A stretch of 64,000 nt of DNA from Macrostomum hystrix. Taxonomy: Eukaryota > Animalia > Platyhelminthes. Location: assembly GCA_950097015.1 (NCBI GenBank), contig CATNEN010000008.1, positions 1,612,001-1,676,000 of the forward strand, read 5' to 3'. Within the stretch, counting starts at the first letter, position 1, and each line of letters starts with the position of its first letter. A program made the translations under genes and the position numbers. Below the pieces are notes generated by a model. The model was not told the origin of the DNA and ran no database searches. It saw only the letters and a program-made list of their open reading frames with translations. Below, one piece after another: positions 16,681-50,620 of the stretch.

Positions 16681-19600
16681 TCACACCCAGCTTCTGTCAG
16701 TCGCGGCGGGATTCCGTCTGCCGCCGATGCTCCTGCCGGTTCTGCTGAATGGCGAGGGCGTCGGAGTGGGCCGCCGCGGCGTAAGCAGAATGGCGACATC
16801 GGCGTTGCCGCCGCCGCCGCCGAAGATGACGTCATTGCTAGCGTAGGCTGGTTCGGCAACAACCGCACAGCCAGCCAGGCCTGCCAGCGTGCGCAGAAGT
16901 TCCCGACGGAATCGGCCGCTGAACATGCAGTAGGGCACAATGTTGATGGCGGAGTTCGCCACCACCAGCAGGTTGGACACCTCCTGGAAGACGAAGTTGG
17001 CCAGGTCATCCTTCTCCTGGCAGTCGCCGCCGCTTTCCCTGACGTCCCGCAGCTGCTTGGTGCTCCAGATGAAGTGGGTCAGCGCGGCAGGGATTTGGCA
17101 GACGAAGAACAACACCACCACACCGATCAGCATCCCGGTGGTGTCGCCGCGACAGGCCTCGTTGGCGTTGATTCGTCGACGCGCCCGACGTACCGCCCGG
17201 ATTAGGAAGGTGTTCATAACGGCCAGACTGACGAAGGGAATCAGCACCACCAGCAGCAGCCAGGCAACCAGGTGATAATAGACTCGAAAGGCTGAGGACT
17301 GGCCAAAGCTGGAGGTGTGATACCACAGCACCCCGGCGTCTCTGAGGTAGCGAACCTGGTCCATGCGGGCGCGCCAGGCGGGCTCGCCGTAGCGCTGCAG
17401 AAGTCGAATCTCCAGGTGGGCCAGATCCTGACTGGTCATGTTGCGCAGGTAGGCAGGCGCCTCGGTGCGCCACAGTTCCTGCTCGAAGAAGCGAGGCACC
17501 GAGTAGATAGCGGAGCCGACAAACACCGCGGCGACCACGCGACCAACCAGGCGTCTACTGCAGAGACGCTCGGCTAGGAACGGGTGACAGATCATCAGGT
17601 AGCGATCGGTTGTGAATGCCACAGTCAGCCACACGGATGCCACCTAGCGTTTTTGACAAAAGTGTAAACGCAACTGTAAAAATTTGCGCCAAGAAAACTC
17701 ATCTTTGTTGAACTGACCTTTTAAGACCCACAAAATTGCGTCATTAAAAAGAATTAGTACTTGATGCTTGGCTTTCTAAGAATCAGTACTTGATGCTTGG
17801 CTTACTAAGAATCAGTACTTGATGCTTGGCTTACTAAGAATCAGTACTTGATGCTTGGCTTTCTAAGAATCAGTACTTGATGCTTGGCTTACTAAGAATC
17901 AGTACTTGATGCTTGGCTTACTAAGAATCAGTACTTGATGCTTGGCTTTCTAAGAATCAGTACTTGATGCTTGGCTTTCTAAGAATCAGTACTTGATGCT
18001 TGGCTTTCTAAGAATCAGTACTTGATGCTTGGCTTTCTAAGAATCAGTACTTGATGCTTGGCTTTCTAAGAAGCAGTACTTGATGCTTGGCTTTCTAAGA
18101 ATCAGTACTTGATGCTTGGCTTTCTAAGAATCAGTACTTGATGCTTGGCTTACTAAGAATCAGTACTTGATGCTTGGCTTTCTAAGAATCAGTACTTGAT
18201 TCTTGGCTTTCTAAGAATCAGTACTTGATGCTTGGCTTTCTAAGAAGCAGTACTTGATGCTTGGCTTTCTAAGAATCAGTACTTGATGCTTGGCTTTCTA
18301 AGAATCAGTACTTGATGCTTGGCTTTCTAAGAATCAGTACTTGATGCTTGGCTTACTAAGAATCAGTACTTGATGCTTGGCTTACTAAGAATCAGTACTT
18401 GATGCTTGGCTTTCTAAGAATCAGTACTTGATGCTTGGCTTACTAAGAATCAGTACTTGATGCTTGGCTTACTAAGAATCAGTACTTGATGCTTGGCTTA
18501 CTAAGAATCAGTACTTGATGCTTGGCTTACTAAGAATCAGTACTTGATGCTTGGCTTACTAAGAAGCAGTACTTAATACTTATACTTTCTAAGAATAATT
18601 TCATGATTGCCAAGCTCAGAAAGAGAAAGGTTTAAAGTTTTTTGTCAATTCCTGACTGTCACCCATTGAGTCTAAAAGGACAAGTTTCTCGCTGATGAGT
18701 CTAGCGAAAGCAAATTAGCGGCAAAGGGCCACTGGAACATCCACTTCTGCAACGGCGCATTAGGCAGCTGAATTACAGAGTGCCATGGAGACAGAAACCA
18801 ACTCAACTACAGGGTATGGAGAGAGGCGAAAGACGAGAGTCCTCTAACTGTGCTGTCTGTGTAAGACAAACTGAATGTATTGCTTAAATTACTAAGGAAT
18901 AGAGCTGTCAGTTCAGGGTGTCTGTCAGTTCAGGTGTCTGTCAGTTCGGGTGTCTGTCAGTTCGGGGTGTCTGTCAGTTCAGGGTGTCTGTCAGTTCAGG
19001 GTGTCTGTCAGTTCAGGTGTTTGTCAGTTCGGGTGTCTGTCAGTTCGGGGTGTCTGTCAGTTCAGGGTGTCTGTCAGTTCAGGGTGTCTGTCAGTTCAGG
19101 TGTCTGTCAGTTCGGGGTGTCTGTCAGTTCGGGGTGTCTGTCAGTTTTGGGTGTCTGTCTGTTCAGGGTGTCTGTCAGTTTTGGGTGTCTGTCTGTCTAT
19201 TCTGCAGGTCTGTTCCGATATGCTAGGAGCGCGGAATGATATTCAGATCCGAGACTTTGAGATTCCCTGAAAGTGACGGATCAGGCTGAGCTGTGAGCCT
19301 AATTAGATTTGCGCCGAAGCCCTGCGCCCAAACCCTTGTCTTTTTGGCCAAAAAATGTTCCGTCCGAGAATTCTCTTCTTTCCTTGAGCAATGTACCGCT
19401 CTGCCCCCTATTGCCATTTCCGTTGATGATACATCTGGGATTTGTGAAAAACTCCCAAATCTGAAATTTAATGCTGAACCCATTTTAATGCTGAAGTTTA
19501 TGCTATAATTATCTAGGATAAACAAGCATTCAGATTTTATAGACTGTAGGAGAGGGGAAAGTAAAAAACAACAATGTTTTCTTATTTGCGATTGCTTTTC

Positions 19601-22383
19601 CAATAGTGCATAGTACGAGTTAAGTTATGCCCTCTATTTGTGTCTCTCATCTATTCGAAATACTGAATTAATCTAGGAACATCCTACACCCGCCAATCCT
19701 AAACCAGCCAATCCTACACCAGCCAATCCTACACCAGCCAATCCTACACCCGCCAATCCTAAACCAGCCATTCCTACACCAGCCAATCCTAAACCAGCCA
19801 ATCCTACACCAACCATTCCTACACCAGCCATTCCTACACCAGCCAATCCTACACCAGCCAATCCTAAACCAGCCAATCCTACACCAACCATTCCTACACC
19901 AGCCATTCCTACACCAGCCAATCCTACACCAGCCAATCCTACACCAGCCAATCCTAAACCAGCCATTCCTACACCAGCCATTCCTACACCAGCCAATCCT
20001 AAACCAACCAATCCTACACCCACCATTCCTACACCAGCCAATCCTACACCAGCCAATCCTAAACCAGCCATTCCTACACCAGCCATTCCTACACCAGCCA
20101 ATCCTAAACCAGCCAATCCTACACCAGACAATCCTACACTAGCCAATCCTACACCAGCCATTCCTACACCAGCCAATCCTACACCAGCCAATCCTACACC
20201 AGCCAATCCTACACCAGCCAATCCTACACCAGCCAATCCTACACCAGCCAATCCTACACCAGCCAATCCTACACCAGCCAATCCTACACCAGCCATTCCT
20301 ACACCAGCCAATCCTAAACCAGCCAATCCTACACCAGCCAATCCTAAACCAGCCAATCCTACACCCACCATTCCTACACCAGCCAATCCTACACCAGCCA
20401 ATCCTACACCAGCCAATCCTGCACCAGCCAATCCTACACCAGCCAATCCTACACCAGCCATTCCTACACCAGCCAATCCTACACCAGCCAATCCTACACC
20501 CGCCAATCCTAAACCAGCCATTCCTACACCAGCCAATCCTACACCAGCCAATCCTACACCAGCCAATCCTACACCAGCCATTCCTACACCAGCCATTCCT
20601 ACACCAGCCAATCCTAAACCAGCCAAATTTTACACCAGCAAATCCTACACCAGCCATTCCTACACCAGCCATTCCTACACCAGCCAATCCTAAACCAGCC
20701 AATCCTACACCCACCATTCCTACACCAGCCAATCCTAAACCAGCCAATCCTACACCAACCATTCCTACACCAGCCAATCCTAAACCAGCCAATCCTACAC
20801 CAGCCAATCCTAAACCAGCCATTCCTACACCAGCCAATCCTACACCAGCCAATCCTACACCAGCCATTCCTACACCAGCCAATCCTAAACCAGCCATTCC
20901 TACACCAGCCAATCCTACACCAGCCAATCCTACACCAGCCATTCCTACACCAGCCAATCCTAAACCAGCCATTCCTAAACCAGCCAATCCTACACCAGCC
21001 AATCCTACACCAGCCAATCCTACACCAGCCATTCCTACACCAGCCAATCCTAAACCAGCCAATCCTACACCAGCCATTCCTACACCAGCCAATCCTAAAC
21101 CAGCCATTCCTACACCAGCCAATCCTACACCAGCCAATCCTACACCAGCCATTCCTACACCAGCCAATCCTAAACCAGCCATTCCTACACCAGCCAATCC
21201 TACACCAGCCAATCCTACACCAGCCAATCCTACACCAGCCATTCCTACACCAGCAAATCCTACACCAGCCAATCGTAAACCAGCCATTCCTACACCAGCC
21301 ATTCCTACACCAGCCATTCCTACACCAGCCATTCCTACACCAGCCATTCCTACACCAGCGAATCCTACACCAGCCAATCCTACACCAGCCAATCCTAAAC
21401 CAGCCATTCCTACACCAGCCAATCCTACACCAGCCATTCTTACACCAGCCAATCCTAAACCAGCCATTCCTACACCAGCCATTCCTACACCAGCCAATCC
21501 TACACCAGCCAATCCTACACCAGCCAATCCTACACCAGCCAATCCTACACCAGCCAATCCTACACCAGCCATTCCTACACCAGCCAATCCTAAACCAGCC
21601 AATCCTACACCAGCCATTCCTACACCAGCCAATCCTAAACCAGCCATTCCTACACCAGCCAATCCTACACCAGCCAATCCTACACCAGCCATTCCTACAC
21701 CAGCCAATCCTAAACCAGCCATTCCTACACCAGCCAATCCTACACCAGCCAATCCTACACCAGCCAATCCTACACCAGCCATTCCTACACCAGCAAATCC
21801 TACACCAGCCAATCGTAAACCAGCCATTCCTACACCAGCCATTCCTACACCAGCCATTCCTACACCAGCCATTCCTACACCAGCCATTCCTACACCAGCG
21901 AATCCTACACCAGCCATTCCTACACCAGCCAATCCTACACCAGCAAATCCTACACCAGCCAATCGTAAACCAGCCAATCAGACAGCAGCCAATCCTACCC
22001 CAGCCAACCCCAGCCCCTCGCGCTGTCACCTGAAACAGAAGGTTGAATGCGTGCGAATAAATATAGACGTGCGGCAGCCAGCGAAAGTCGCTCCACACGA
22101 CATAGTCCTGCTGATCGTGCTGAGCCCGAGTGTCCTTGAGGAAGACCAGAAGTGACATGATCAGTACGCTGGTATCAGCGAACGCCAGTGCTATCAGGTA
22201 CAGATTTGTTGTACTGTGCCGCATGCTACGCTTGCTCAGCACGGCCAGTGACAGGAGGTTAGCAGCAACACCGATGCAACAGACACTGGTGCCGCAGCAG
22301 CCCACAAGGTAGTAGGATAGAGTCCTGGCCCTTGTTATCGCCTCTTGCGAGTCGGTTTGATTCAATGCCGATTCCAAAGGCAT
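16681..22383 (-). CDS. Rhodopsin-family neuropeptide GPCR, FMRFamide-receptor-like (about 438 aa, 2 exons)
   Basis: Exon 22383-22030 (TM1-TM3: GVAANLLSLAVL, NLYLIALAFAD) ends TTTCAG|GTGACA. Exon 17643-16681 begins after CTAG (VASVWLTVAFTTDRYLMICHP; PRFFE; FFVCQIP; NLLVVANSAINIVPYC). Phase 0 join; 1317 nt. Confidence 0.9.
17755..18590. repeat. 29-bp satellite (AAGAATCAGTACTTGATGCTTGGCTT[T/A]CT), about 29 copies, GPCR intron
   Basis: Directly visible and highly homogeneous. Confidence 0.97.
18905..19200. repeat. 17-18-bp minisatellite (GGTGTCTGTCAGTTC[A/G]G)
   Basis: Directly visible. Confidence 0.92.
19680..22010. repeat. 15-bp satellite (CCAGCCAATCCTACA), about 155 copies, GPCR intron
   Basis: Directly visible; gives rise to the long GVGLA/GWCRI pseudo-ORFs. 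Confidence 0.98.
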
Positions 22384-24925: not shown

Positions 24926-27900
24926 ATGCATTCCGCCGAGCTGGCAGTCCTGCTGGCTCTGGCTGCCGCTTCTGCGTGCTTCGCTGGGTGTCAGGCTCTG
25001 CTGAGCAATGGTGAGTCTGGCTAGAAAGAAAAAGAAAAACGTATTTTATCAATCAAAATGCAATCGACATACGTTCTCTTATCGATTGCTCGTGCCAGAG
25101 AGTTCCTCTCTTATCGATCGCTCGTGGCAGAGAGTTGCTCTCTTATTGATCGCCAGTCCATCTTTTATCGATCGCCAGTCCCTCTCTTATCAATCGCCAG
25201 TCCTCTCTTATCGATCGCCAGTCCCTCTCTTATCGATCGCCAGTCCCTCTCTTATCGATCGCCAGTCCTCTCTTATCGATCGCCAGTCCCTCTCTTATCG
25301 ATCGCCAGTCCTCTCCTATCGATCGCCAGTCCTCTCTTATCGATCGCCAGTCCCTCTCTTATCGATCGCCAGTCCTTTCTTATCGATCGCGAGTCCTCGC
25401 TTTATCGAACGCTAACTACTCGCCTCACAACAACGAAAGCCTCCAACAAGGATAGCCGCGGCCAGCCCTGCAGCCATCGGGGCATTCAGGTGGCCATTGA
25501 CGGAGCCGAATTTCAGCATCCCGGCTTTCCCTGCCAGATGTGCGACTGTCGCAACGGCGTCATCGAGTGCCACAGGCGGCCCTGCGACGAACTGCCAGAC
25601 AGCGGCTGCCCAAGAGAGCGCCAGAGCTTCGATGGCTGCTGCGTAGTCTGCTTAGGTAGGGTCTACGAGGTGGCTGTTTAGCAGTGTCTGTAGTAGACAG
25701 TTTTAACACCCCGCCATTTAAAACCAATCAGCTCAAGCAGCCTCCGGCTCGGGCGTTAGCCGGAAGCGTCGACAACTGGATACCACAGACACCGAAGTCG
25801 AGGGCAGTGGCGGAGGCGCCGGCGAAGCAGACGCTCCAGTGCCGACAACGACAACGGCACAACCGACTACAACCACTACCCCGATCACCACAACCACGAC
25901 GCGAGCTCCGCCACCTCCATCTGATGTCAAGGGACCAGGCGGAGGTCGTGCGGCCGGCGGCCGGTCACTTGGTGGCGGCCCGGACGGTGGCGGCCCGGTG
26001 GTCCCCGGACCGGCCGGTCCGCAGGGTCCCCGCGGCGACCTCGGCCCGCCAGGACCGCCAGGACCCGAGGGTCTTCCAGGCGAGGCGGGCAGCCAAGGCA
26101 AACCCGGCCGGAAAGGCGACAAAGGTGTCACCGGACCTGCGGGACTAAAGGGCGACGCTGGGCCGCCTGGCGAGGTCGGTCCGATCGGCCCCAATGGCGC
26201 CCGAGGACGCGACGGCGAGCAGGGCTTCGCCGGATCGCCGGGTCCCCGAGGATCGGCGGGAGAGTCAGGGCCAAAGGGACAGCCGGGCGGTGCTGGGATA
26301 GCCGGAGCCAAGGGCGAATCCGGTCGAGCCGGCGTCAAAGGCGAAGCTGGACAGCGAGGACCGAAGGGCGAGCCTGGCGTCAAAGGCGACAAAGGCGGCA
26401 AGGGCTTCCAGGGCGACGCCGGACGGCCAGGAGCCGACGGGCCACGCGGACCAGTCGGACTGCGAGGACCAGACGGACCGCCAGGACCGGCCGGCGGCAA
26501 AGGACACACAGGCGTGCAGGGCGACGTCGGTCCGACCGGAGTGGACGGACCGCCAGGACCGCCTGGCGATCCGGGTCCGATTGGGCAGCGCGGAGCTCCG
26601 GGCAGCCTCGGACAGGCCGGCCAGCCGGGCGAGAAAGGCGACAAAGGCGAACTTGGCTCTGTCGGACCCGCCGGTCAGCAGGGGCCAATCGGCCTACTCG
26701 GATCTCCGGGTGATCCGGGAGATCCTGGACCGCGAGGCTACGACGGCTCGGCTGGTAGGCCAGGTCCGCCAGGCGTTGCCGGTCAGCCGGGCACACCGGG
26801 AACAGCCGGCATCAAGGGCGACCGTGGACCGAAGGGCGACAAAGGCGTCAGCGGGCAGGACGCTCCGGCCGGCGAGAAGGGTCAGAAAGGCGACGCCGGA
26901 CCGGTCGGACCGCCCGGAAAGGTCGGCGCCCGCGGCCAGCCTGGCCTGACAGGCAGCCCTGGCGAGAGCGGCAACTCCGGAGCCAAAGGCGATCGAGGCG
27001 AGCCGGGCCGGTCTGGCAAGGACGGTGCGCCCGGCCGGGCCGGACAGCCCGGGCCGCAGGGACCACAGGGTGAGGCGGGCTTCGCAGGCGCAGTCGGACA
27101 GCCGGGTGATCGCGGACCAGCGGGCACCCCCGGACGGCCTGGCGAGCCGGGTCCTCAGGGCCAGCAGGGTCCGCAGGGAGCGGCTGGCCCAGTTGGTCCG
27201 GAGGGTCCGAAAGGCGAGGCTGGCGTTCCCGGGCCACCTGGCGAGCCCGGACAGCCCGGACCAGTCGGAGCGCCCGGAGCCGGCGGTCCCCAGGGCTCAC
27301 CTGGCACAGCCGGACAGATCGGACCAGCCGGCAAGCCGGGCGACGCCGGACCGACCGGTCCGCCTGGCCAGCAGGGACCCCAGGGACCGGCCGGACAGGC
27401 TGGCGAGCGGGGCGAAGCCGGACCTCCCGGAGAGCCCGGACCGCAGGGACAAAACGGAGCGATTGGCGCCAGGGGCACTCCCGGTAAGGCCGGACCGAAG
27501 GGTGCGGTCGGCGAGAAGGGTCCAACAGGGCCGACTGGAGCTCAGGGCAAGAAAGGACTGAAGGGCGACGGCGGCGCAGCTGGGCCAATCGGCGCGCAAG
27601 GCAAGGACGGACCGCCAGGCAGCACGGTTAGTTGAACACCCGGGGCCAAGCGTAAAAATACTTAGTACCCACAACCAAGCACTCCATTATAACAGCCAGA
27701 GCAGAGTACATATTTTAGCACCCCGGGCCAAAACGCGGTGCCAAGCACCCCATTTTAACACGCGGTGCCAAGCACCCCATTTTAACACGCCGGCCAAGCA
27801 CCCCATTTTAACACGCGGTGCCAAGCACCCCATTTTAACACGCGGGCCAAGCACCCCATTTTAACACGCGGGCCAAGCACCCCATTTTAACACGCGGGAC

Positions 27901-30900
27901 AAGCAGCCCATTTTAACACGCGGGGTAAGTCACCAGACAAGGCAACATGAGTCGATTTAAAATAGAAAAATTATTTCTCTCCTTCTGCAAAAAACCAGGG
28001 ACCAGCCGGACCGCCTGGCCCGCCTGGCAACCGTGGCTCAACCGGACCGCAAGGCGACGAGGGCGAACAGGGACTAAAAGGTTCAGTTGGATCGGATGGA
28101 GACAAGGGCGAACGCGGAGCTCCCGGACCGGACGCTAAGCTCGGCGGCCTACTGCGCAGTCGTCGCGAAGCCGCAGCCGCCGGACCGCCAGGCGCAATCG
28201 GCGAGCGCGGACCACCCGGCGACGACGGAGTCGACGGCGCCCCTGGCAAAACCGGCGAACCCGGCTTGGCGGGCGATCCAGGACCGCCTGGACCCTCCGG
28301 ACCGCGCGGACCGGCAGGCATCAAGGGAGAGAAGGGCGGAGTCGGCGATGCGGGCGACCGCGGCGCCGCTGGAGTCGTCGGTCCGCAGGGTCCGCCAGGC
28401 GAGCGCGGCGCCGCTGGCCCGCCGGGCGAAAACGGCACGGCCGGCCGCGACGGCGCGCCGGGTCTGTCGGGCCAGCAGGGCCGGCGGGGACCAACCGGAG
28501 AGCGGGGCTTCCCGGGCGCAGCCGGAGCCCCGGGCCAACCGGGCGAGCTTGGCCTGGAAGGTCCAGCCGGCCTGAAGGGCGAGCCGGGGCCGCTGGGCGA
28601 CCCGGGCCTGCCAGGACAGCGCGGCGAGGCCGGCGAACGCGGCCCGGCGGGCGCCAAAGGTGAGCCTGGTAGGGACGGCCAAGCCGGGCCGGCCGGTCCG
28701 CAGGGACAGCCGGGCGTTCGAGGCGCCGCCGGGCAGCCAGGCGAGCCCGGATCAGCCGGCGACAAGGGCGCCACGGGGCCAACTGGAGAGCGCGGCCCGG
28801 ACGGCGATAATGGAGACCGCGGCGCCAAGGGCGGCAAGGGAGCCCCCGGTGCGGCTGGACCTCCCGGCATGCAGGTGACGGAGATAAGATGATAAAAAAG
28901 ATAAAAATAACAAAAACTGTCTACCCCAGCTGTGCAGCCGGCAGCACGGCTGTTCAGTCCATGGACACCCACCCTCAATTACCCCAGCTAAGCCCCGTAG
29001 CCATTTAACAGCTGGACTGAACTGTTGCAGACACAAAACTCTGAAAACTAACGGAAATACGAGCGGAGCGACAAATTATTCGTACAACACTCGCAACCGT
29101 CCTCCAGGGTCACCAAGGAGCGCCCGGCGAGCGTGGCGTCTCAGGTCCACAGGGCGACAAGGGCGAACCGGGCCCGCCAGGTGAGCGCGGCCGTCAGGGA
29201 TTCCCCGGACCCTCCGGCGAGTACGGACCACCCGGACCGGCAGGCGCCAAGGGCGACACCGGATTCCCAGGAGCTCCAGGCGAAATGGGGCCGCGCGGCC
29301 CGATTGGAATAATCGGCATCGCCGGGCCGAAGGGCCAGCCCGGACCGCCGGGCGACGTCGGGCCGACCGGTGCCAATGGCGAGAAGGGCACCCCGGGCCC
29401 ACTTGGATTTCCTGGACTGCCCGGTCCGCCCGGACCGAAAGGCTTCATGGGCCAGACAGGACCGCGCGGCACCAACGGAGAGCCGGGCGCGGAGGGACAG
29501 CGGGGCGAGGCAGGTCCGCAAGGCCCGATTGGGCCGCCAGGGCCGCAGGGCTATCCGGGCGATCCGGGCGCGGCTGGCGACTCCGGCGAGCCCGGCGATC
29601 CGGGTCTGCCCGGCGACCCCGGACCAGCCGGCCCACCCGGACCAATCAGAGTCATCCAGGTGGCGGCCGGAATGCTTAGCGACGAGGCCGGAGCTGCGGC
29701 CTGGCTTGGAGCCGATGTAAGTAACAATTTTTTGTTTAAAAAGTAAAATACAGACCGAATATTCTTATAATACTACTGAATTTGCTGTTTAAGTAGTATA
29801 AAAACTCAATTCATTTAAAAAAAAATTATTTTAGGCGTTCGCTCAACCGGATGGCAGCAAGGAGAAGCCGGCCCGGACTTGCCGGCAGCTGTTTGAGAGC
29901 CGGACCAGCCTGCCCGACGGTGAGGGAGGGTGGCAATCAGATAGGATAGATAAACACTTGGAATAGAAAGATAAGCATAGATTGTGTCGAATCTTCGCAG
30001 GCCAGTACTGGATCGATCCAAACGGTGGCCAGTTGGATGACGCGGTGCAGGTTGTCTGCAGCCGCGGCGATAACGGTCAACAATGGAGCTGCCTGGAACC
30101 CGTGGCAGCCAGCGCTGCCGATTTGACCGCCGCTGCCGCCATAGCCTCCAATGCTGACGGACGCGTCTGGTTATCGGAGACCGAGATGCGAGAGGTGTGA
30201 AAATTTTCCAGGCTCCCCAGTCGACAATTCTGACTTAAGAGCCCTGGGCAAAACACCCCATTTAACAGCCTAGACTAAACACATTTAATAGACTAGACTA
30301 AACATCCCATTTAACAGACTAGGCTAAACACTCCATTTAATAGCCTAGACTAAACACCCCATCTAGACTAAACACCCCATTTAATAGCCTAGTCTAAACA
30401 CCCCATTTAACAGCCTAGACTAAACACTCCATCTAGACTAAACACCCCATTTAATAGCCTATAGTCTAGACACCCGACTTAACAGCCTAGACTAAACACC
30501 CCATTTTAGCACCCTGGAACAAACACCCCATTTTAGCACCCTGGGACAAACACCCCATTTTAGCACCCTGGGACAAACACCCCATATTAGCACCCTGGGA
30601 CAAACACTCCATTTTGACACTCTGGGACAAAGACTCCATTTTAACACCCTGGAACAAACACCCCATTTTAGCACCCTGGGACAGACACCCCATTTTAACA
30701 CCCTGGAACAAACACCCCATTCTAGCACCCTGGAACAAACACCCCATTTTAGCACCCTGGGACAGACACCCCATTTTAGCACCCTGGGACAAACACCCCA
30801 TTTTAGCACCCTGGAACAAACACCCCATTTTAACACCCTGGAACAAACACCCCATTTTAGCACCCTGGAACAAACACCCCATTTTAGCACCCTGGGACAA

Positions 30901-31282
30901 AACCCCATTTTAAATAATCCCGCAGCTTGAATACGGCGTTGACGGCAGCCAGCTGGCCTATCTGCAGCTGCTGTCTAGCCGGTCCAAACAGCGCGTGTCT
31001 GTTAACTGCGAGTCCACCAGCGCTCAGCTCGGCTCCCTGCTGGTACTGTACACCGACTCCGGTCGGACGGTGACCGACTCAGGCCGGCTGGACGACGAAG
31101 ACGACAGCTTCAACGAAGGCAGACGCCTGCTAACAAGCGTCGGCGGCAGCGACGGTTGCCGACCGGGTCGCCGGTTGGACGTCGAACTGGCCGGACGAGC
31201 CGTACATCTGCCAGTCAGGGACGTCGCCGCTGTGCAGGGCCGGCCGCTGCGGCTGCGCCTGCACGGAGTCTGCTTCTCTTAG
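24926..31282 (+). CDS. Fibrillar collagen alpha chain (signal peptide, VWC, about 332 Gly-X-Y triplets, COLFI; about 1438 aa, 8 exons)
   Basis: Exons 24926-25010, 25440-25655, 25732-27626, 27999-28874, 29108-29716, 29835-29919, 30001-30194, 30926-31282; sum 4317 nt in frame. [17 protein letters not shown] signal peptide; [18 protein letters not shown]; [27 protein letters not shown], terminal VCFS. The exon 2 and 3 acceptors have alternatives. Confidence 0.93.
25060..25410. repeat. About 21-bp minisatellite (CTCTTATCGATCGCCAGTCC) in collagen intron 1
   Basis: Directly visible. Confidence 0.9.
27715..27930. repeat. About 26-bp minisatellite (CCAAGCACCCCATTTTAACACGCGG) in collagen intron 3
   Basis: Directly visible. 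Confidence 0.9.
28920..29035 (-). mobile_element. SINE family B tail fragment in collagen intron 4
   Basis: CTGTTCAGTCCATGGAC..CCCTCAATTAC.CCAGC..CCATTTAACAGCTGGA matches 46540-46650. Confidence 0.7.
30250..30915. repeat. Two related 25-26-bp arrays (AAACACCCCATTTAACAGCCTAGACT then AAACACCCCATTTTAGCACCCTGG[G/A]AC) filling collagen intron 7
   Basis: Directly visible; the unit switches near 30495. Confidence 0.93.
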
Positions 31283-32590
31283 GAGATCTGGACACTGATT
31301 GATTTGATCGATTGATCTGAACGGCTGATTGACATAGAACATTGATTTATTAGTATTATAAAACCGCATAAGTAAACCTAGTGTATAGAGTAACTAAATA
31401 TTAATCAATTTGACACACTGACATTATTCTTCTATCGGGTTTTTCGAATAAGGAAAAAGTTCGCAACAAAGTATTAGTTGACATGGAACTTTTTACTTAG
31501 CACAACCAATGGCTTAAAAGTATCAGTAAGTGATTATTCGTTCATTTTTTGTTATAACGAAGTCGTGGCTTTTATCGTATTTAAGTGTCTACGGAGACAG
31601 GAAAGCGAGAATTATGACAACATTATAGTAATATAATTAGAGCTGTATTCAATTGTTGTAATCGTCAATTTTTTCGCAACTCCCATCAGACTAACCGCCC
31701 TGCAAACACTGATGATAATTTAGACTACATAATAAGTTTTGAACTTTCTGATTGCAGACAAATATAAAAGTCAATCTAACACTAAGCTTGCTTCAGCTCG
31801 CAATTAGATGCCATTTTTGCAGGTGGTGCAGACATCAGCACATTTTTTGTCTAGTTGTTTTTCATTTAAAATCCGAAAATTGCATTCTAGCCGCAGGTAA
31901 ACGGCGAAAGCAACTATTCCCTTGTTTAAATATGACAAGCGCTTCGTCATCTAATTAGTTCTAAAATTTGAAAGTAAGAAAGACACTGGCTTAAAGCCGC
32001 TCGCAGACTAGACCAGTGGCCGGTTTGGTGAACTTAATTCAATTCAGAATTAGCGGCTAACAAAAAACTATGGAAATAAAATATTACTTAACAAACAGAA
32101 ATTAGCAAAAATACAAATAGGTATTTTGATTTATCGGCAGGGAAAATACAATTGCTGTTAAACAGGCAGACAGACAGTTACAGTAAAATTGGCTCACACG
32201 TTTCCAGTTGGCACACAGAATGGATGAAAGATAAAATACGAGTATAAAGCAAACAAAAATGTTAAGTTCGAGTGAGAAGACAAAAAAATAGTTTTAAGTT
32301 ATTTTATGTTAATTCGAGTATTTGCTTGTGTGTTGGTATGCACAATGCAACAAAAATATTTATTTACATTGAAGGTAAAAACATATATTAGTGTTTAAAT
32401 GACAATTGTGAGACTAATGAAAAAAGAGACTAATACTCAGACTGAAAAAAAAATGTTTCACTAAACTACACTCTTTTCGCGTTACCTAAAAATGAAATTA
32501 ACAATGATAAACGCACTTAAAAGTTTTCATGTTTGTTTAAGTACACATGCACTTTGATGTGCATAGGTACTTTATTAGTGCGCCAATAAC

Positions 32591-36814
<4,224 letters not shown>

Positions 36815-36864
36815 CTGCAATTTTTTGAAAGATTTTAAGTCTTTCTAATTTATCAGAGCATAAT

Positions 36865-41200: not shown

Positions 41201-44200
41201 GTGATCCTGCAGATAATCCAGGTGATCCACGCAAGCGCTAGCTAGAAGATTCTGAGCGCGGCCAAGTAGAACGCGAACTCCGTTGACGCGGCCGCTGCGC
41301 ATGCCGGTGAGGAAGGCGATCAGCTGTTTGGCGCCGGCCGCTCTGATCATGTCCTCGCGCAACAGGAAGCAGAATGTTGGCCGGCCGCGAAGGCGCCACC
41401 AGTTGGATAGAAACTGCAGATTGGTGCGCACCTGAACATTGGGAAGCGGAACGGAAGTCTATAACTGACTTCAGATAAGGGGCAGTACCGAGTTTTGAGA
41501 AGTATAAAAAGTTACTCTGTAACTACTCTAGAACAAGAGCGTAACGACTGTAACGAGTCGGTAACTAGTCTAGAACGGGTCTGGAATGACCCTAGAACAA
41601 GTCTGTAACGAAAGGATCCTGTAACGAGTCGGTAACTAGTCTAGAACGGGTCTGGAATGACCCTAGAACAAGTCTGTAACGAGTTGGTAACTAGTCTAGA
41701 ACGGGTCTGGAATGACCCTAGAACAAGTCTGTAACGAGTCGGTAACTAGTCTAGAACAAGAGCGTAACGACTGTAACGAGTCGGTAACTAGTCGAGAACG
41801 GGTCTGGAATGACCCTAGAACAAGTCTGTAACGAGTCGGTAACTAGTCTAGAACGGGTCTGGAATGTCCCTAGAACAAGTCTGTAACGAGTCGGTAACTA
41901 GTCTAGAACGGGTCTGGAATGACCCTAGAACAAGTCTGTAACGAAAGGATCCTGTAACGAGTCGGTAACTAGTCTAGAACGGGTCTGGAATGACCCTAGA
42001 ACAAGTCTGTAACGAGTTGGTAACTAGTCTAGAACGGGTCTGGAATGACCCTAGAACAAGTCTGTAACGAGTCGGTAACTAGTCTAGAACAAGAGCGTAA
42101 CGACTGTAACGAGTCGGTAACTAGTCGAGAACGGGTCTGGAATGACCCTAGAACAAGTCTGTAACGAGTCGGTAACTAGTCTAGAACAAGAGCGTAACGA
42201 CTGTAACGAGTCGGTAACTAGTCTAGAACGGGTCTGGAATGACCCTAGAACAAGTCTGTAACGAGTCGGTAACTAGTCTAGAACGGGTCTGGAATGTCCC
42301 TAGAACAAGTCTGTAACGAGTCGGTAACTAGTCTAGAACGGGTCTGGAATGACCCTAGAACAAGTCTGTAACGAGTTGGTAACTAGTCTAGAACGTGTCT
42401 GGAATGACCCTAGAACAAGTCTGTAACGAGTCGGTAACTAGTCTAGAACAAGAGCGTAACGACTGTAACGAGTCGGTAACTAGTCGAGAACGGGTCTGGA
42501 ATGACCCTAGAACAAGTCTGTAACGAGTCGGTAACTAGTCTAGAACAAGAGCGTAACGACTGTAACGAGTCGGTAACTAGTCTAGAACGGGTCTGGAATG
42601 ACCCTAGAACAAGTCTGTAACGAGTCGGTAACTAGTCTAGAACGGGTCTGGAATGTCCCTAGAACAAGTCTGTAACGAGTCGGTAACTAGTCTAGAACGG
42701 GTCTGGAATGACCCTAGAACAAGTCTGTAACGAAAGGATCCTGTAACGAGTCGGTAACTAGTCTAGAACGGGTCTGGAATGACCCTAGAACAAGTCTGTA
42801 ACGAGTTGGTAACTAGTCTAGAACGGGTCTGGAATGACCCTAGAACAAGTCTGTAACGAGTCGGTAACTAGTCTAGAACAAGAGCGTAACGACTGTAACG
42901 AGTCGGTAACTAGTCGAGAACGGGTCTGGAATGACCCTAGAACAAGTCTGTAACGAGTCGGTAACTAGTCTAGAACAAGAGCGTAACGACTGTAACGAGT
43001 CGGTAACTAGTCTAGAACGGGTCTGGAATGACCCTAGAACAAGTCTGTAACGAGTTGGTAACTATTCTAGAACGGGTCTGGAATGTCCCTAGAACAAGTC
43101 TGTAACGAGTCGGTAACTAGTCTAGAACGGGTCTGGAATGACCCTAGAACAAGTCTGTAACGAGTCGGTAACTAGTCTAGAACGGGTCTGGAATGTCCCT
43201 AGAACAAGTCTGTAACGAGTCGGTAACTAGTCTAGAACGGGTCTGGAATGACCCTAGAACAAGTCTGTAACGAGTCGGTAACTAGTCTAGAACGGGTCTG
43301 GAATGACCCTAGAACAAGTCTGTAACGAGTCGGTAACTAGTCTAGAACGGGTCTGGAATGACCCTAGAACAAGTCTGTAACGAGTCGGTAACTAGTCTAG
43401 AACGGGTCTGGAATGACCCTAGAACAAGTCTGTAACGAGTCGGTAACTAGTCTAGAACGGGTCTGGAATGACCCTAGAACAAGTCTGTAACGAGTTGGTA
43501 ACTAGTCTAGAACGGGTCTGGAATGACCCTAGAACAAGTCTGTAACGAGTTGGTAACTAGTCTAGAACGGGTCTGGAATGACCCTAGAACAAGTCTGTAA
43601 CGAGTCTGCAGCAAGTACGAACCTCATCGATGACCATGTCCATATCGTGCAGCAAATAGAAGTCGCGCATTTCAAACAGCAACGGATAGCACAGCACGGT
43701 GCGGCCTGGCACCCTGTAGAACTTGGCTGTCCCCAGCTGGCCAATCGGACGCAGAGGCCGGCCGGTCAGTCCGAGTTTATCGCACTGGCCTAGGCATTCT
43801 TGTACGCGAATCAAATTCTTGGATGGCCATAGGGTGATTGGCTCCACCTGGTTTAGTCAATTGAGATTATTGGTGTCATTTTTTCGATACAGTAACTGGC
43901 AGTCATACTAACATTAGCTTTATGCTGAGGGGAAAACATAATGCTCTAGATCTCTATATATTCGAATAAATTATTTTTTATGACTTCAAAACCAATCACG
44001 ATTCCAGCATCTCTAGACTTGATAAACAACTGCAAAGAAGAACAGACTAGTGCATTGGAACACGCGCATGAGGGCCAATTTTCTTATTCCTCTTGTTTAA
44101 TTCGCGCAAAGCAAGACAGAAGGGAATTAAAACAATTATGTTTAGTCTATCGGCCAGTGACGCCACCTGATAAAGCTATTGGCTGACGAAATGGCAAAAA

Positions 44201-47200
44201 AATTGAGGTGAAAATCAATGGCTAGCTTTCACCGCACCTGGGTCCCTGCATCCGTTCAGGGTGAATGAAACTGAATCAAGACAGGTTTGAAACTGAATGA
44301 AGACAGGTTTGAAACTGAATCAAGACAGATTTGAAAGTGAATAAAGACAGGTTTGAAACTGAATCAAGACAGGTTTGAAACTGAATGAAGACAGGTTTGA
44401 AACTGAATCAAGACAGGTTTGAAAGTGAATAAAGACAGGTTTGAAACTGAATCAAGACAGGTTTGAAAGTGAATAAAGACAGGTTTGAAACTGAATCAAG
44501 ACAGATTTGAAACTGAATGAAGACAGGTTTGAAACTGAATCAAGACAGGTTTGAAACTGAATCAAGACAGGTTTGAAACTGAACGACGACAGGTTTGAAA
44601 CTGAATCAAGACAGGTTTGAAACTGAACGACGACAGGTTTGAAACTGAATCAAGACAGGTTTGAAACTGAATGAAGACAGGTTTGAAACTGAATGAAGAT
44701 AGGTTTGAAACTGAATGAAGACAGGTTTGAAACTGAATCAAGACAGGTTTGAAACTGAATCAAGACGGGTTTGAAACTGAATCAAGACAGGTTTGAAACT
44801 GAATCAAGACAGGTTTGAAACTGAATCAAGACAGGTTTGAAACTGAATCAAGACAGGTTTGAAACTGAATCAAGACAGGTTTGAAACTGAACGACGACAG
44901 GTTTGAAACTGAATCAAGACAGGTTTGAAACTGAACGACGACAGGTTTGAAACTGAATCAAGACAGGTTTGAAACTGAATGAAGACAGGTTTGAAACTGA
45001 ATGAAGATAGGTTTGAAACTGAATGAAGACAGGTTTGAAACTGAATGAAGACAGGTTTGAAACTGAATCAAGACGGGTTTGAAACTGAATGAAGACAGGT
45101 TTGAAACTGAATCAAGACAGGTTTGAAACTGAATCAAGACAGGTTTGAAACTGAATCAAGACAGGTTTGAAACTGAATCAAGACAGGTTCGAAACTGAAT
45201 CAAGACAGGTTTGAAACTGAATCAAGACAGGTTTGAAACTGAATCAAGACAGGTTTGAAACTGAATTAAGACAGGTTCGAAACTGAATCAAGACAGGTTT
45301 GAAACTGAATCAAGACAGGTTTGAAACTGAATCAAGACAGATTTGAAACTGAATCAAGACAGGTTTGAAACTCAATGAAGACAGGTTTGAAACTGAATCA
45401 AGACAGGTTTGAAACTGAATCAAGACAGGTTTGAAACTGAATCAAGACAGGTTTGAAACTGAATGAAGACAGGTTTGAAACTGAATCAAGACAGGTTTGA
45501 AACTGAATGAAGACAGGTTTGAAAGTGAATCAAGACAGGTTTGAAACTGAATGAAGACAGGTTTGAAACTGAATGAAGACAGATTGAAAGCAAACTATAC
45601 ACGAACGAACCTGAGTTGGGGTCTGGCTCTGAACGCCAAAAGTAGCCAGCATCTGCTGCAGTCGGACAGACTCTGAGATGAGTACGACTTGCACCACCAG
45701 ATCCTGCAGTTTATTAATGAACGGCACCCGACGAGACAAATCTAGCGGACGTTCGTGAAAAGCTTTATAGCGTCGCAGTAGATCAAGGTCGTGCGCCATC
45801 AGGTAGCCAGATTCCAACAGTTCAGCTATGAGAGCCACCGCTTCGCCCCATAGGAAGGCGGTGTCGCCGAGGTCGAAGTTGGGTCGGCGGGCCTGACTAC
45901 CGGGCTGGTCCCGTTCCTCTTGAAGGTAGTCACGCGGGACATAGTAGAATCTGGGCAGCCAGCGCCGCGGAGTAGGCGGCTGCGATTGGTCCGGACTGGG
46001 TAGAAGATAGGTGAATCAGGGATTTGGTGAATCAGGGATTTGGTGTTTCAGGGATTTGGTGAATCAGGGATTTGGTGAATCAGGGATTTGGTGAATCAGG
46101 GATTTGGTGAATCAGGGATTTGGTGTATCAGGGATTTGGTGAATCAGGGATGTGGTGAATCAGGGTTTTTGTGAAGCAGAGATTTGGTAAATGAAGAATT
46201 ATGTGAATCAGGGTTTTGGTGAATCAGGGATTTGGTGTATCAGGGATCGGGTATATTTTGGGATTTGGTGCATAGGGATTTGGTAAATAAGGGATTTGGT
46301 AAATAAGGGATTGGGTAAATTAGGGATTTTATGAATCATGGATTTGGTGAATTAAGGATTTGGTGTATCAGGGATTTGGTAAATGAAGGATTTAGTGAAT
46401 CAGTATTGGAGGATATTTTGAATAAAAATAGAAAAAGATACATAATAGTACTAATAATTAATTACACCTGCCCAGATTAGGTTCGATGTGCCACCGACAG
46501 CACAGCCGCAGCTATTGCGCGGCGCATCTGAAGGCTGCGTACAGCTGTTCAGTCCATGGACCTTATTGGACCCTGGGGAGAGGCCACACCCGCCGCCCTC
46601 AATTACTCCCAGCCAATGCAGGTACCCACCCATTTAACAGCTGGATGAACTGAAGCAATGCAGAGTTAAGAGTTTTGCTCTAAAGGACACAAATTGTCAA
46701 GTCGGGAATCGAACCACCGACCTTAAAGTCGTGCGTCCGACGTTCGGGTAGAACAGAAAATTTAGCCCGATATTTGAGGGAAAAAAAGAAAAAATGTGGG
46801 TATTTGAAATTGCCCCATGGTCTTTCTACTGTTAAAATAGAAACCTAAAATATCAGCAAGTAACAGTTGATATCAAGAGTATTATTGTTCCTCACCCAGT
46901 TGGGAAGTCGCATTCCACTCGCAATTCGTCTAGTTTCTCCTTATACAGACTGGCAGTTTTACTGTCGCCCTGCAGACAATGCTCAATAATTAGGAAGGCG
47001 TACATGATTGGCCATTGACACTCGATTAATTCGAAGCTTTTCAATTCGCCGTGACTATATAGGCTGCCTCGTCTGGCTTCCAATACGGTTCCGTAGCCGT
47101 CGCGAGAGAATCGTTTGAAGCCGTAGTCGCCGCGAAATCTGGCAAATATATTGCGCAATGCAGTCTTGCGCACAGCTTCGTGAGTAGCGTGGCCAGGCCA

Positions 47201-50119: not shown

Positions 50120-50620
50120 AGGATGAAAGATAGGATGGAAGGAGAAGATAGGGTGGAAGGGGAAGATAGGATGGAAGGGGAAGATAGGGTGGAAGGGGAA
50201 GATAGGATGGAAGGGGAAGATAGGATGGAAGGGGAAGATAGGATGGAAGGGGAAGATAGGGTGGAAGGGGAAGATAGGATGGAAGGGGAAGATAGGATGG
50301 AAGGGGAAGATAGGATGGAAGGGGAAGATAGGATGGAAGGGGAAGATAGGGTGGAAGGGGAAGATAGGATGGAAGGGGAAGATAGGATGGAAGGGGAAGA
50401 TAGGGTGGAAGGGGAAGATAAGATGGAACGGGAAGATAGGATGGAAGGGGAAGATAAGATGGAACGGGAAGATAGGATGGAAGGGGAAGATAGGATGGAA
50501 GAGGAAGATAGGATGTAAGGAGAAGATAGGATGGAAGGGGAATATAGGGTGGAGGGGGAAGATAGGATGGAAGGGGAAGATATGATGGAAGGGGAAGATA
50601 GGATGGAAGGAGAAGGGTGA
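50120..50620. repeat. 18-bp purine minisatellite (GAAGATAGGATGGAAGGG), intergenic
   Basis: Directly visible. Confidence 0.95.

Follow-up and report, generated by a model that had tools for sequence, protein, structure and literature searches.

The major helix of a fibrillar procollagen encoded in the Macrostomum hystrix window (the whole stretch of 64,000 nucleotides analysed here) is interrupted by a 16-residue non-collagenous segment, which is retained in the spliced transcript and contains a match to the proprotein-convertase consensus. The chain is an interrupted fibrillar procollagen with the order VWC, helix and COLFI, from a flatworm-like animal. At present the main yield of the analysis is a clean, transcript-verified gene model (Table 1). 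The segment is a genuine, transcribed non-collagenous linker, an interruption of the G18G type, set into the major helix, and for a mainly mechanical role of this linker we give about equal weight to the case for and the case against. The furin-like cleavage that the RSRR sequence brings to mind is considered below together with the other readings.

The transcript evidence used here comes from two studies with four public runs in all, whose contigs were aligned to positions 25400-31300. Although the runs carry no RNA label, we take their contigs to be RNA-derived because the depth over the introns is zero. In these contigs introns 2-4 (25656-25731, 27627-27998 and 28875-29107) and introns 5-7 (29717-29834, 29920-30000 and 30195-30925) have all been spliced out at GT..AG borders. 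Exon 1 and intron 1 were placed by inference, since the contig end left unaligned before 25439 corresponds to 24980-25009. The resulting eight-exon model gives an open reading frame of 4317 nucleotides, or 1438 codons, which begins with the ATG at 24926 and ends with the stop codon at 31280-31282. Other collagen transcripts in the same runs match this gene over 20-30 nucleotides only and then diverge, with joints such as 26649>28216 and 28119>28587 among others, and several paralogous fibrillar collagens are therefore co-expressed. Two of the introns carry related minisatellites, at 27733-27924 and 30251-30912, built of 26-27 nucleotide units that share CACCCCATTTTAAC/CACCCCATTTAAC, and intron 1 holds a different array with a 22-nucleotide unit at 25138-25412.

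Table 1. The procollagen gene, its encoded parts and the transcript contigs that span the break (positions are those of the window)
Feature	Positions	Strand	Basis or remark
Fibrillar procollagen gene	24926-31282	+	8 exons, 1438-aa product; spliced contigs and splice-site/frame check
Exons 1-4	24926-25010, 25440-25655, 25732-27626, 27999-28874	+	procollagen gene
Exons 5-8	29108-29716, 29835-29919, 30001-30194, 30926-31282	+	procollagen gene
Signal peptide, residues 1-24, hydrophobic core	24926-24997	+	read from the translation
VWC (von Willebrand C) module of the N-propeptide, 10 Cys	25440-25655	+	Pfam PF00093
RKRR, residues 111-114, between VWC module and helix	25761-25772	+	motif scan
Thr-rich mucin-like stretch, residues 139-157	25845-25901	+	translation
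N-terminal helix part, 195 triplets (585 residues)	26007-28133	+	split by intron 27627-27998
Non-collagenous break, 16 residues, residues 778-793	28134-28181	+	translation; retained in contigs
RSRR, residues 785-788, proprotein-convertase consensus	28155-28166	+	motif scan; predicted scissile bond between R788 and E789
C-terminal helix part, 137 triplets (411 residues)	28182-29647	+	split by intron 28875-29107
C-telopeptide and COLFI C-propeptide, 6 Cys	29648-31279	+	coding 29648-29716, 29835-29919, 30001-30194, 30926-31279
Contig X1 record 2	27998-28871		spans break
Contig X2 record 6	27998-28330		spans break
Contig X4 record 13	28120-28871		spans break
Contig X5 record 15	5-kb, whole coding region		spans break

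The assignment of the chain to the fibrillar family rests on its two ends and on the length of the part between them. The N-terminal VWC module was found with PF00093 at an E-value of 1.7e-5 and 25.5 bits, slightly below the 27.6 cut-off, and its 10-Cys pattern is present. At the other end, PF01410 detects COLFI in the exon at 30001-30194 with an E-value of 2e-7 (31 bits against a cut-off of 26.2) and gives a weak match to the last exon; in a local HMM comparison this COLFI domain can be aligned with those of the collagens P0018, P0065 and P0149. The C-telopeptide carries a GA/DA motif. A six-frame scan for Gly-X-Y repeats returned five in-frame blocks between 26007 and 29647, and in the spliced model these form a collagenous domain of 1012 residues (residues 193-1204) composed of 332 triplets and the 16 residues of the break. 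The domain thus has the length of a fibrillar helix (~1000 residues, ~338 triplets). It departs from the fibrillar prototype, in which Gly-X-Y is uninterrupted, by the 16-residue break and by one Gly to Ala substitution. We keep the chain in the fibrillar family as an interrupted member because most of the planarian members, discussed below, depart from the prototype in the same way. FACIT collagens lack COLFI, have TSPN/VWA at the N-terminus and are divided into a number of short collagenous domains; a FACIT identity was ruled out by the COLFI domain and by the single long helix with one break.

Two small departures lie elsewhere in the chain. The glycine substitution produces an Ala-Pro-Ala triplet at 26862-26870 (residue 478, helix triplet 96) that is found in the transcript contigs too. 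A Gly-rich segment follows the Thr-rich stretch and precedes the helix, and here run X1 lacks 15 nucleotides at 25971, which is a copy-number polymorphism of five residues.

The break itself was described in the sequence-only reading as 195 triplets, 16 residues and 137 triplets that add up to 1012 residues, with RSRR at a precise position, and the translation of the spliced model reproduces every one of these numbers and coordinates. The segment lies within one exon (27999-28874) and has complete triplets on either side, GPD before it and GPP after it; both introns of the helix region likewise fall between complete triplets. One explanation is that the segment is not a real part of the protein at all but the result of faulty assembly, a mini-intron left unspliced or a lesion in a dead gene, and this we consider hardly credible. 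The earlier reading had left room for the segment being spliced out. Instead, it is kept unchanged in spliced contigs of the four runs: positions 28131-28184 are covered in four contigs without gap, joint or base difference, and the contigs of two independent studies reproduce the segment exactly within a fully spliced and open frame of 4317 nucleotides. The composition of the break is that of an exon, with GC and GC3 of 73% and 62% against 74% and 65% in the exons, while the introns have 46% GC. No GT..AG pair able to excise the segment is present at the 28134-28181 borders, so the borders are without splice signals. Besides the gene's own contigs, the runs contained no other contigs at least 90% identical across the break. 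The contigs, the borders and the GC and GC3 values together exclude excision, a retained intron, an assembly error and a pseudogene for the major transcript.

Whether the 16 residues replace triplets or were added to a complete helix is a separate matter. The sequence-only reading had proposed that the break replaces triplets rather than adding length, on the ground that the total is close to canonical. The near-canonical total of 1012 residues stands, but replacement is no more than one possible reading, because without the break the chain has 332 triplets in perfect succession, or 996 residues. The two helix parts were also slid along an uninterrupted starfish helix of 1011 residues, and the identity at X and Y positions was 13-16% at every offset; positional homology to the starfish helix is unrecognisable because the X and Y positions have diverged too far. 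An origin by a recent compensated frameshift or by an inversion was considered and rejected, as neither the other two frames of the 48 nucleotides nor their reverse complement contain Gly-X-Y. In a Hulmes-type interaction score calculated for the single chain, which bears both on assembly into D-periodic striated fibrils and on the effective length of the break, there is no peak at the 234-residue stagger, and the relation of the 585 residues before the break to this period (585 = 2.5 x 234) is for that reason arithmetic only.

The sequence-only reading also took it as given that the major helices of fibrillar collagens are as a rule uninterrupted or nearly so, and this premise does not hold for flatworms. 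Of the 11 COLFI collagens of the planarian Schmidtea, colf-8 and colf-11 alone are described as free of interruptions, so that 9 of the 11 chains are reported to be interrupted (PMC8072372). The presence of an interruption in the M. hystrix chain is consequently not new in itself (PMC8072372). The planarian colF chains are COLFI flatworm collagens like the one described here, and over the N-terminal ~400 residues, to which the comparison extends, colF-4 shows a signal peptide, a VWC module, a basic KKQRKLRD sequence and a Thr-rich stretch in the same order (PMC6453901). In the N-terminal sequences of Supplementary Data 1 of the same paper, the signal peptide of colF-1, -3, -5, -6 and -7 gives way directly to R-x-K/R-R and then Q (PMC6453901). 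The RKRR of the present chain is also followed by Q and thus repeats, within those N-terminal sequences, the pattern of colF-1, -3, -5, -6 and -7. Because R-x-K/R-R-Q is shared, flatworm fibrillar collagens look like routine substrates of convertases at their N-termini, which suggests that convertases may generally be used for N-terminal processing in this group.

Among collagens outside the flatworms, the prototype fibrillar chain has ~338 triplets without interruption, and the helix of collagens XXIV and XXVII is 997 residues long with small imperfections (PMC2852846). The clade A procollagens (vertebrate I-III and alpha2(V), and Acanthaster P0018) resemble the present chain in having VWC (in the present chain a match just under the cut-off), a helix of ~1011-1014 residues, COLFI and introns between complete triplets (PMC2852846). 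Their helices, however, are uninterrupted, as in P0018 with 1011 residues in one run, whereas the present chain has the 16-residue break and the Gly to Ala substitution. The present chain also differs from clade A in lacking a minor helix, in having no more than two introns within the helix region, and in carrying a dibasic site rather than a recognisable N-proteinase site. The likeness to the clade C collagens XXIV and XXVII lies in an imperfect and slightly short helix, of 997 residues in these types (PMC2852846) and of 996 residues in the present chain without its break. In clade C, in contrast, the imperfections consist of Gly substitutions and the insertion of one residue (Gly-Xaa-Yaa-Zaa), with no 16-residue linker, and the clade C N-propeptide is of the TSPN type and not VWC.

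Several searches were directed at relatives of the break region. A word search with the break region gave no match among proteins of 160-511 aa. An exhaustive phmmer search returned 47,958 collagens, of which the best 150 were long generic chains, none with an R-X-[KR]-R-containing break in a similar setting, and a search with the exon sequence 25734-27626 gave matches dominated by collagens XXI, IX and similar types. An exact look-up of the open reading frame returned no match, nor did a scan of metagenomes with break peptides. The negative outcomes can be traced to the size range of the word search, to the many generic collagens that crowd the results and to DNA collections that were not eukaryotic, and they are no sign that relatives are absent.

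A triple helix requires glycine as every third residue, and the 16 residues of the break are therefore non-helical. In a trimer, they would form a short, locally unwound and solvent-exposed segment situated 585 residues (~170 nm) from the N-terminal end of a helix that would otherwise be a rod of canonical length. The break would be comparable to the interruptions of collagen IV, FACITs, C1q and mannose-binding lectin, and in C1q, mannose-binding lectin and collagen IV a break in Gly-X-Y gives a bend or flexible site in a rigid rod. These three are non-fibrillar, and their breaks are mostly of 1-10 residues. The primary effect of the M. hystrix segment is most likely to be mechanical, in that it could provide a flexible hinge or kink together with a weak point accessible to proteases. 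Local unwinding and flexibility at the break follow from collagen chemistry and a hinge function from physical reasoning, and we regard this account as evenly balanced between right and wrong. It draws on the verified break, its retention in the mRNA, the exon-like GC, the combination of VWC and COLFI, the interruptions in planarian chains and the flatworm-best matches of a neighbouring GPCR, and on this basis a hinge explanation would seem to have an even chance of being correct.

A different role for the same exposed segment is that of a basic docking patch, which would bind glycosaminoglycans, a cell receptor or another matrix protein, and in which RSRR would be kept for its charge and not for cleavage. 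The three Arg and one Lys of each break would present 12 positive charges per trimer, and multibasic sequences of the furin type are known to bind heparan sulfate, according to work cited in PMC3281273 (its reference 7). We nevertheless think a docking patch improbable, since no specific binding motif was recognised in the break and its one Glu and four Ala are unhelpful for binding.

The remaining explanation is programmed cleavage, in which a furin-like enzyme of the late secretory pathway or cell surface would cut all three chains after RSRR. The 300-nm molecule would then become two shorter rods of ~593 and ~415 helix residues, or it would enter the fibril as a pre-nicked molecule that is easily remodelled; we see both the cut and this outcome as possible, while leaning against them. 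RSRR agrees with R-X-K/R-R, and by inspection of the translation the protein has a signal peptide, so that the motif is found in a protein on the secretory route, as furin substrates are. Only two R-X-[KR]-R sequences occur in the 1438 residues of the chain, RSRR being one of them and RKRR, at the N-propeptide junction, the other. Because of the position of RKRR the protein evidently meets convertases, and N-terminal R-x-K/R-R followed by Q in the sequences available for planarian colF-1, -3, -5, -6 and -7 also favours cleavage. On the other side, the motif would arise by chance fairly often in a segment of this kind. Among random 16-mers without stop codons, 7.6% carry it when the composition is that of the exons, as compared with 0.9% at intron composition, and the figure is 10.5% for 16-mers read off-frame from these exons; the high level in the exons is explained by the abundance of Arg codons in GC-rich coding DNA. 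A chance occurrence in ~8-10% of such 16-mers makes the RSRR motif alone suggestive but not significant.

The geometry of the site can be read both ways. The furin pocket fits an 8-residue core, P6-P2′, of a 20-residue motif and prefers a small residue at P1′ (PMC3281273). The predicted core in the M. hystrix chain, LLRSRR/EA, lies wholly within the break and so within the segment expected to be unwound, which speaks for accessibility. However, positions P12-P14 and P6′ of the 20-residue motif (P14-P6′) fall in the flanking Gly-X-Y, where the triple helix may limit access, and P1′ is Glu instead of the small residue preferred by furin (PMC3281273).

Precedent is likewise divided. The C-propeptides of collagens V and XI are processed by convertases. 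A fibrillar main helix cut in two would be without precedent, as we know of no fibrillar collagen whose main helix is split by cleavage. A convertase site inside a helix interruption is likewise absent from the papers found. The nearest known cases are collagens in which R-X-K/R-R is located in a linker adjoining a triple helix and is cut in the secretory pathway, namely the MACITs (XIII/XXIII/XXV; PMC4678570) and the cuticle collagens of C. elegans, which are cut by BLI-4 (PMC10538796). These show that linkers next to triple helices can be cut, but in all of them, the C-propeptides of V and XI included, the sites lie before or after the collagenous domain and cleavage releases it from a membrane anchor or a propeptide; none of them splits a continuous fibrillar helix. 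The earlier reading had proposed "a programmed cleavage or hinge" for the break. The hinge half of that proposal is supported by the chemistry of 16 residues outside Gly-X-Y, while the furin half is compatible with the sequence and no more than that, given a chance rate of 8-10% for the motif. Nicking at RSRR/E in the middle of the helix by a furin-like convertase is plausible, if on balance the weaker expectation, and cleavage may be put forward as a reasonable hypothesis.

The rest of the window contains features that are independent of the collagen. Tandem arrays are found at 19681-22007 (15-nucleotide unit, 155 copies), 41619-43606 (55/110-nucleotide unit), 44266-45589 (22-nucleotide unit, 60 copies) and 50127-50615 (18-nucleotide unit, 27 copies). 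The last of these reads GWKGKI in one frame and so mimics Gly-X-Y, and it is not collagen. A single-exon GPCR of the rhodopsin family that resembles FMRFamide receptors lies on the reverse strand at 16684-17643; its best matches are in trematodes and cestodes, at 36-43% identity, followed by molluscs, a pattern that most likely points to a flatworm, presumably a free-living one, whose near relatives are missing from the protein database. Two long open reading frames with zf-RING_2 matches are also on the reverse strand, at 34203-35135 and 35552-36820, the second with a weak PHD match in addition.

The fibrillar collagen of textbooks is an uninterrupted 300-nm rod, and in vertebrates even the substitution of one glycine causes disease. 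The present chain, well expressed and canonical in length but with a long internal linker, is a natural experiment on how far interruptions are tolerated and on how folding restarts past a break. A more far-reaching version of the story, in which mid-helix cleavage of a flatworm procollagen by a furin-like convertase is a programmed step that yields two rods or a pre-nicked subunit for a matrix of rapid turnover, we consider unlikely. Should RSRR really be used, a fibrillar helix split at a convertase site would be seen for the first time, and work on matrix remodelling in regenerating flatworms would gain a simple and testable point of entry.
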